Source of the DNA: Podarcis bocagei
Lineage: Eukaryota
Assembly (NCBI GenBank): GCA_964188305.1
Contig: OZ076886.1
DNA length: 64,000 nucleotides
Strand: one strand, 5' to 3'
Positions within the stretch are counted from its first letter, which is position 1; the number at the start of each line of letters is the position of its first letter. The notes under the pieces are model-generated. The model was not told where the DNA came from. It was given only the letters and a program-made list of their open reading frames with translations, and did not search any database. Below, one piece after another: positions 7,165-8,157 of this stretch. The translations under genes were made by a program, and so were the position numbers.

Positions 7165-8157
7165 ATGAATAAAATTATTGTTTATGAAGAGGAAAACTTT
7201 GAGGGGTTCAGGAAAGAATTCACTTGCAATGTTCCTGACCTACGTTCTGTAGACTTTGGGGATTGCATTTCCTCCCTTAAGGTGATTGGACAACCTTGGC
7301 TGGTCTTCCGGGATCCCAACTATAAAGGTGTGGGTTTTGCATATGAAGAAGGAGAACATAAGCACATCCAGTTAAGTAATAACATTTCTTCTATCCAACT
7401 AGTCACTGAGGACTTGGAAGATCCTCAGATCACACTTTATGAGCACCCTAACTATGAAGGGATAAGCAAAGTGATAAAAGAGGAAACCAACCTAAGTTAT
7501 GGGTATTTCAATGACAAGGCGTCTTCCCATATTGTCCAGAAAGGTGCCTGGCTCCTCTATGAACATCCAAGGAGAGGTGGTTGGTACTATATAGCTCGAG
7601 AAGGAACGAAGCTTGATAACTATGGCCCTTTGTATCATTTCCATGATAAGTGTTCCCACGTGTATCCCCTTAAAAGTGGCCGGCCTGTTATCACTAGCAG
7701 GATCTTATGGGACCGCATGAACTTGGAGAGTGAGAGGGATGTGATGATTGATGAGATAAATTGTATCAACACCACGGAAACAGAGCAGACATTCACCACC
7801 ACCAGCAGTCGAACCTATGAAATGTTCACAAGCCACAGCTTCAAATTAGCAGTCCCTACCCTTCAAATAAATGAGAGTTTCAATTTAAGCATAGATCCGA
7901 GCACCAACCTGACAGTAGAAAAAGGAAAAATTGACTCTTTTACTACTGTAAACAAAATCGAGGTGACCATGCCAGCCAAGGTCCCCAAAAAATCAGAATT
8001 GAACATCCAGGTGATCATGAAGGTAGCCACGGCCTCTGTTCCTGTGGAGCTGATCATCACCAATAATGGTAAATCAAGGACGGAAAATGGGCAGTATCGT
8101 AGTGTGTCAGGACGCAACATCACCACCAAATACAGCATGAAATCAGTGAAAAATTAA
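7165..8157 (+). CDS. Beta/gamma-crystallin + aerolysin-like protein (EP37 / epidermal differentiation-specific protein-like), 330 aa, intronless CDS, no signal peptide
   Basis: Four Greek-key motifs (YEEENFEG...DCISSL, FRDPNYKG...NNISSI, YEHPNYEG...NDKASSH, WLLYEHP...HDKCSHV), then a Ser/Thr-rich aerolysin-type domain (ILWDR...ESERDV, NTTETEQTFTTTSS, SHSF, MPAKVP, SVPVEL). Architecture matches amphibian EP37 / betagamma-CAT alpha subunit as recalled. AATAAA candidates at 8720 and 9013. Confidence 0.9.
   Translation: MNKIIVYEEENFEGFRKEFTCNVPDLRSVDFGDCISSLKVIGQPWLVFRDPNYKGVGFAYEEGEHKHIQLSNNISSIQLVTEDLEDPQITLYEHPNYEGISKVIKEETNLSYGYFNDKASSHIVQKGAWLLYEHPRRGGWYYIAREGTKLDNYGPLYHFHDKCSHVYPLKSGRPVITSRILWDRMNLESERDVMIDEINCINTTETEQTFTTTSSRTYEMFTSHSFKLAVPTLQINESFNLSIDPSTNLTVEKGKIDSFTTVNKIEVTMPAKVPKKSELNIQVIMKVATASVPVELIITNNGKSRTENGQYRSVSGRNITTKYSMKSVKN

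Follow-up and report, generated by a model that had tools for sequence, protein, structure and literature searches.

The window analysed here, a stretch of 64 kb in full, contains a gene that is probably best explained as the lacertid orthologue of the short (S) of two amniote paralogues of epidermal differentiation-specific protein (EDSP/EP37), that is, a working gene whose product has an aerolysin-type beta-pore-forming module. The parts of this reading differ in strength. It is close to certain that the locus is a functional protein-coding gene, and the membership of its product in the EDSP/EP37 family, as judged from sequence comparison, appears equally secure. By analogy with the members of the family that have been studied, the chances that the S protein actually forms membrane pores may be about even. 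Annotations of this gene exist in Podarcis, Lacerta and Zootoca, and the finding, although correct, is already known.

The open reading frame (ORF) of 993 nt, which runs from ATG to TAA on the plus strand (7165-8157) and encodes 330 amino acids, was found to be intact and contained in a single exon as the initial annotation had described. It is the sole ORF longer than 270 amino acids in the window, which has zero N, 43% G+C and a vertebrate-like CpG observed/expected ratio of 0.25. No second copy of the gene was found by tblastn across the window, and a Pfam search of its eight other long ORFs returned zero matches. The encoded protein is 98% identical to its counterparts in Podarcis muralis, P. 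lilfordi and P. raffonei (6-8 differences) and 96% identical to that of Lacerta agilis (XP_032996444); an identical protein sequence was absent from the protein collection searched. Its closest relatives are annotated lacertid EDSP-like genes, for which the RefSeq name is 'epidermal differentiation-specific protein(-like)', some entries being without a name. The noncoding flanks are collinear with P. muralis chromosome OZ076955 at 93-98% identity, which places the window in a lacertid near Podarcis, and the synteny is common to Podarcis, Lacerta and Zootoca, with an NLRP-like gene upstream and RNF123 downstream. The upstream NLRP-like neighbour (PYRIN-FISNA-NACHT) falls outside the 64 kb. Alignment with the Lacerta and Zootoca loci places the beginning of RNF123 (SPRY, TPR_RNF123, RING) at about 19200 on the plus strand, and this gene probably occupies much of the window beyond that point. 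The coordinates of the features are collected in Table 1.

Table 1. Features of the EDSP-like gene in the 64-kb window and the evidence on which each is placed
Feature	Position	Strand	Evidence or remark
Exon 1, noncoding 5' UTR	4530..4683	+	Spliced contigs; the 5' limit is a minimum
TATATAAA motif, in exon 1 or just upstream; candidate promoter element	4609..4616	+	Read directly
Intron 1 in the 5' UTR, 2389 nt, GT..AG	4684..7072	+	Contigs of two organisms and 2 raw RNA reads
Exon 2: 92 nt of 5' UTR, whole CDS, 3' UTR	7073..8761	+	Contig; the 3' end is a minimum
Complete CDS, 330 codons plus stop	7165..8157	+	One coding exon
Two betagamma-crystallin domains, residues 1-169, four Greek keys	7165..7671	+	Pfam, phmmer, Foldseek
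Aerolysin-type module, residues 170-330	7672..8154	+	Family profile, AF2, structure search
Presumed membrane-insertion loop, residues 229-256, between two long strands	7849..7932	+	AF2 secondary structure, lower pLDDT
Ser313 codon AGT at the conserved C-terminal Cys column	8101..8103	+	Alignment
AATAAA, candidate poly(A) signal of a short 3' UTR form	8720..8725	+	Contig stops at 8761

Expression was examined in a survey of 14 small runs from four studies and two species labels, in which 34-61% of the words sampled from 6900-8900 were present, and three of these, which are transcript assemblies, were aligned to 2900-8899 together with one raw RNA run. A transcript was found and it is spliced. 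One contig of 1851 nt (depth 33) covers 4530-4683 and then 7073-8761, and a contig of 2246 nt from a second organism joins 4583-4683 to 7073 and runs on past 8899, a position that is also passed by the contig of the third assembly. The same joint (4683 to 7073) is present in two reads of the raw run, which gave only a handful of reads at the locus. The intron is bounded by the donor AAG/GTGGGT of exon 1 and the acceptor tcatgcag/ACTG of exon 2 (7072/7073), so that the 5' UTR intron proposed in the initial annotation is real. The block 4370-4695 is 73% conserved in the amphisbaenian Rhineura. Both contig starts (4530 and 4583) lie upstream of TATATAAA, and contigs cannot show a transcription start; this motif is therefore only a candidate promoter element. 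The TATAAA copies at 5880 and 5945 are within intron 1. At the other end, the proposed poly(A) signals are present as motifs, since the AATAAA at 8720 is followed by ATTAAA at 8765, AATAAA at 9013 and ATTAAA at 9255. Two contigs reach about 315 nt beyond 8899, and the one that stops at 8761 does so after the first of these motifs.

Several repetitive features were also observed around the transcript. A long (TTTC)n/(CTTT)n microsatellite occupies 4222-4313, some 220 nt upstream of where the first transcript contig begins, and a (TG)n tract at about 8570 in the 3' UTR differs in length among the three transcript assemblies (+4, +6 and +8 nt). At 3100-3300 and 3900-4100, contig and read depth is in the tens of thousands, with back-joints of about 60-64 nt and with joints to the opposite strand that link one stretch to the other. 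Such a pattern is characteristic of a repeat, interspersed or tandem, that is abundant and transcribed and has inverted copies upstream of the gene.

An intronless coding sequence might suggest a recent pseudogene or retrocopy that is decaying or drifting neutrally and has stayed open by chance, but the single-exon CDS is common to all orthologues and is found in conserved synteny; likewise, the low read depth in one raw RNA run, which would also fit such a copy, has to be set against the spliced 5' UTR intron. Orthologous coding sequences from eight squamates (Podarcis, Lacerta, Zootoca, Rhineura, Hemicordylus, Elgaria, Sceloporus and Eublepharis) were all found to be open and single-exon, with 329-337 codons, which together with the window gene makes nine open ORFs. 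Nei-Gojobori dN/dS ranges from 0.20 to 0.47 over all 36 pairs, and over the squamate span from geckos to lacertids it is about 0.25-0.3. For three deep pairs that are independent of one another, omega was estimated at 0.24-0.28; the upper 95% bootstrap limits are 0.34-0.40, and not one of the 1000 replicates attains a value of 1. Compared with Lacerta agilis, the coding exon is 97% identical, whereas the flanks are 84-93% identical. When measured against the window sequence, dN/dS is 0.14-0.41 for the crystallin half, 0.27-0.56 for the aerolysin half and 0.10-0.45 for the insertion segment. At the level of codon comparison, neutral evolution is rejected, and both domains as well as the loop appear to be under constraint. 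A decaying copy is thus very improbable, and the pseudogene reading is effectively excluded.

The protein's N-terminal half is a tandem of betagamma-crystallin domains, in agreement with the four Greek keys claimed from the sequence. Pfam Crystall matches two stretches (whole-protein E 8.9e-25), and phmmer aligns residues 3-151 with the beta-B2, beta-B1 and gamma crystallins of the PDB at E values down to 2e-18. The motifs of the form Y/F-x4-F/Y-x-G begin at residues 7, 48 and 92, and the fourth Greek-key motif, at 132, is degenerate family-wide. A whole-protein AlphaFold2 (AF2) model built from 47 homologues (pLDDT 88) superimposes on gamma crystallins in Foldseek with a TM score of 0.84 by target and an rmsd of 2.2 A. 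The N-terminal sequence has no hydrophobic leader, and because the strand of the first Greek key starts at residue 3, there is no room for a signal peptide, the lack of which had also been noted previously.

The aerolysin-like domain of the initial annotation, for which a Pfam search had been proposed, gave zero matches to the Pfam aerolysin and ETX_MTX2 models when the window protein was searched alone, even at E up to 1, but is borne out by a family profile and by a fold search. With phmmer, residues 171-330 match PDB 6lh8, an 'aerolysin-like protein' of Bombina maxima, at E 7e-4. A profile of 46 C-termini of the family matches 6lh8 at E 2.9e-18 and zebrafish Dln1 at E 5.5e-5, and its next matches are lamprey LIP, parasporin-2, Cry23, Sarol-1 and Cry51; 14 of the 46 family members individually match Pfam ETX_MTX2 and Aerolysin. 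Since the top 50 Foldseek matches of the whole-protein model were all crystallins, the C-terminal module was folded and searched alone. The resulting model (pLDDT 88) contains an elongated beta-sandwich with long twisted strands, and all 12 of its top hits (Foldseek, VIA-align) belong to the aerolysin family. The best of them is 6lhz, with Z 14.3 and an rmsd of 2.5 A over 144 residues, and the eleven that follow have Z values of 7.7-11.5, well above the unrelated rows. These include LSL (11.5), parasporin-2 (10.7), Sarol-1, epsilon toxin (10.2), LIP, Cry23, Mpp75, Sip, Cry51 and the aerolysin prepore (7.7). An aerolysin fold for the C-terminal region from about residue 175 to 330 is thus recovered by three lines of comparison (phmmer, family profile and domain model).

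Within this module, the Pro-Pro pair P274-P275 is nearly invariant (at least 90% of 47 sequences) and is retained in Lacerta and Zootoca, and the window protein and the three other Podarcis proteins have Pro-Lys, the Lys275 codon being located at 7987-7989.

A Podarcis muralis UniRef/Ensembl model (A0A670HXH9, 211 amino acids) consists of EDSP residues 1-174 and 37 other residues, and this tail is encoded at 8974-9084, within the long 3' UTR. Such a structure would imply a GT..AG splice inside the coding exon (putative intron 7687-8972) and a crystallin-only isoform, the splice excising the aerolysin module exactly at the domain linker. The joint is absent among the RNA joints listed over 2900-8899.

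To place the gene within its family, two trees were made with a quick tree search, the second of them without the loop columns. In both, the amniote clade has a support of 98-99, and the squamate S clade and the long (L) clade each have a support of 100. The S clade, which includes the window gene, is squamate-only and comprises proteins of 330-344 amino acids. In the L clade, the proteins of squamates, turtles, alligator and birds follow the species tree roughly; they have a C-terminal tail and a length of 350-390 amino acids or more. Lizards from geckos to lacertids carry both S and L, and in Zootoca the two genes are on one chromosome, 35 Mb apart. On the basis of these phylogenies, amniotes carry a short and a long paralogue lineage, and the window gene is assigned to the short one; the claim that lizards keep an EP37-type member is upheld by full-length homology as well as by this placement in the amniote clade. 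Neither tree resolves the order of the S and L clades relative to an echidna protein and two turtle paralogues with long loops, and the trees are therefore compatible with either one or two loop shortenings.

The echidna protein (Tachyglossus aculeatus, 'EDSP-like') has a very long branch, and its sequence falls short by about 20 residues in the second crystallin domain and by about 11 in the aerolysin module; it may represent either a decaying gene or a poor gene model. Szczesny et al. 2011 had earlier included a platypus 'similar to ep37-L2' in their list, and the toad reviews state that there is no known mammalian homologue.

The presumed membrane-insertion loop was compared in an alignment of 64 family members over the segment from the invariant F226 to K253. 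This segment has 28 residues in the squamate S lineage, including the window gene, 29 in the L lineage and echidna, 34-35 in amphibians and 38-46 in fish, and the two extra turtle paralogues have 38 and 42. The core of the S-lineage loop, FNLSI-DP(S/K/R)T-NLTVEKG, hardly varies over the range from geckos to lacertids. Its tip is polar (DP(S/K/R)T, read as DPST in the window protein), and a charged residue is present in most members; in the window protein it is E237, which sits in register with L233, I235, F239, L241 and I243, at a position that would be lipid-facing. Hydrophobic residues alternate at F239/L241/I243 and at L249/V251, and the loop carries K253 in addition to E237. A count of strictly alternating hydrophobic positions was also considered as evidence against pore formation and was dropped, because the S lineage could not be separated from fish or newts by such a count.

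The same alignment revealed a substitution at the conserved C-terminal Cys column. Ser occupies this column in 15 of the 16 S-lineage sequences, with Thr in Sceloporus, and Cys is kept in fish, newts, caecilians, the frog Discoglossus, L-type squamates, turtles and alligator; Ser is also found in birds and in one turtle paralogue (Emydura). According to the toad studies, the C-terminal Cys mediates the BmALP3-driven disulfide inactivation of BmALP1, and it was reported to be 'conserved from fish to reptiles' and replaced by Ser in birds (PMC10206775, PMC7995273; two later papers by the group of Wang et al. 2020, from which its role is cited here). When the toad Cys is equated with the Ser313 column, which was done by position and motif only, the published conservation from fish to reptiles is true for the L paralogue and false, as far as the aligned sequences indicate, for the squamate S paralogue. 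With Ser313 in place of the regulatory Cys, disulfide exchange of the BmALP1/BmALP3 type would be impossible, and control of the S protein would have to differ.

These features raise the question of whether the S protein still acts on membranes as a pore former. Several observations count against the preferred reading: the window protein alone is not matched by the Pfam aerolysin and ETX_MTX2 models; the loop is 6-18 residues shorter than those of fish and amphibian members, including the frog Discoglossus, and has a polar tip and, in most of the S lineage, a charged residue; Lys occupies the nearly invariant P275 position in the Podarcis lineage; and the closest solved structure, 6lh8/6lhz, is presumed to be BmALP3, a negative regulator according to the toad papers. 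The loop features do not by themselves amount to a loss of pore formation. The main alternative, which is less probable, is that the gene is functional and its product is no longer a pore former, the aerolysin module being kept as an oligomerisation scaffold or as one that binds membranes or glycans. It could, for example, have a structural or regulatory function in gastric epithelium or in epidermis undergoing differentiation, or it could regulate L as BmALP3 regulates BmALP1. The short insertion segment, with its polar tip and a charged residue in the hydrophobic belt, would fit this alternative, but the loop is constrained as much as the rest of the module, its alternating hydrophobic count is not below that of fish or newt members, and 28 residues lie within the stem-loop range of known aerolysin-family pore formers. 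Similarly, the best structural match is a short Bombina aerolysin-like protein, but the lizard protein has kept the crystallin tandem, unlike BmALP3. The loss of the regulatory Cys, the presence in the same species of an L paralogue that keeps the Cys and whose alternating loop is more hydrophobic, and the first description of EP37 as an epidermal differentiation marker (PMC7995273, PMC3110756) are also in line with a non-pore role. It is conceivable, and on balance unlikely, that S EDSP is a diverged derivative that acts in lizard epithelia as a constitutive non-lytic oligomer binding membranes or matrix, or as a regulator of L, perhaps with a crystallin-only isoform.

If the S protein is a pore former, as the preferred reading holds, its action can be outlined by analogy with studied relatives. 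A soluble monomer or dimer would be made and, in the manner reported for EP37 and BmALP1, would be exported in the absence of a signal peptide (PMC7995273, PMC3110756). The aerolysin module would bind membranes and oligomerise, and loop 229-256 would refold into a beta-hairpin that contributes to the barrel, with the crystallin tandem serving as a stabilising or targeting part. The whole process would be controlled without the disulfide switch of the BmALP1 type, and the role in skin, gland or mucosal defence suggested in the initial annotation would be a putative one.

To date, nearly all work on aerolysin-type pore formers encoded by vertebrates has concerned one toad and a few fish. The architecture that combines crystallin and aerolysin parts was described in 2011 (PMC3110756), and papers on betagamma-CAT refer to members in reptiles and birds (PMC10206775, PMC7995273). 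Within the literature collection that was searched for EDSP/EP37 in lizards, we found zero functional or expression studies and no activity data for any reptile member. The locus provides a clean, expressed and constrained lizard example that bears on pore formation and its control in amniotes. Its additions to a known family are modest (S/L paralogy, Ser313 and loop length), and the presence of S and L in one animal offers a testable paralogue contrast and a useful annotation detail rather than a new kind of system.

Among known systems, the RefSeq EDSP-like genes of P. muralis (XP_028574430), P. raffonei, P. lilfordi, L. agilis and Zootoca vivipara are the same gene, with proteins of 330 (329) amino acids, 96-98% identity, a single coding exon and matching neighbours. 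They differ from the window protein by 6-14 amino acids, and the entries are automatic annotations. The EDSP/EP37 proteins of the newt Cynops pyrrhogaster show full-length homology at 46-47% identity (E about 1e-86 to 1e-88; the Cynops EDSP match has E 3.9e-86 over 96% of the length). Like the lizard protein, they are leaderless, have about 335 residues and combine a crystallin tandem with an aerolysin module; however, the newt members have the C-terminal Cys (YRCESG, compared with YRSVSG in the lizard) and an insertion segment of 35 rather than 28 residues, and they match Pfam ETX_MTX2 directly, whereas the lizard protein does not.

The toad Bombina maxima BmALP1, the alpha subunit of betagamma-CAT, belongs to the same family and has the same domain plan (PMC10206775), with a redox Cys where the lizard S protein has Ser313. 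BmALP3, in turn, has been described as a negative regulator in the toad papers. BmALP1 was not recovered by our word-based protein searches, and Discoglossus pictus, with the Cys and a loop of 35 residues, therefore served as the anuran stand-in. For the structural comparison, the 152-residue Bombina chain of PDB 6lh8/6lhz, entries titled only 'aerolysin-like protein (Bombina maxima)', is presumed to be BmALP3. A search with a regular expression for a trefoil-like Cys pattern in the six frames of the window, which is a weak test, found none, in line with the earlier remark that no trefoil partner is visible there; such a partner need not be linked. The designation 'betagamma-CAT alpha-like' given in the initial annotation holds for the architecture; since the regulatory Cys is absent and the insertion loop is shorter, it may not extend to regulation or activity.

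The L-type sauropsid EDSPs (Anolis carolinensis, Zootoca with 378 amino acids, turtle, alligator and bird) are paralogues with 52-55% identity, the architecture in common and a similarly short loop of 29 residues. They differ from the S protein in having a C-terminal tail of 20-60 amino acids, often also a short extension at the N-terminus, and an alternating loop that is more hydrophobic; the Cys is kept in squamates, turtles and alligator, with Ser in birds. At a greater distance, zebrafish Dln1, lamprey LIP (natterin-like), aerolysin, epsilon toxin and parasporin-2 have the aerolysin fold in common with the lizard module (Z 7.7-11.5) at an identity of 8-19%, and their N-termini are jacalin-type lectin or bacterial receptor-binding domains and not crystallins.
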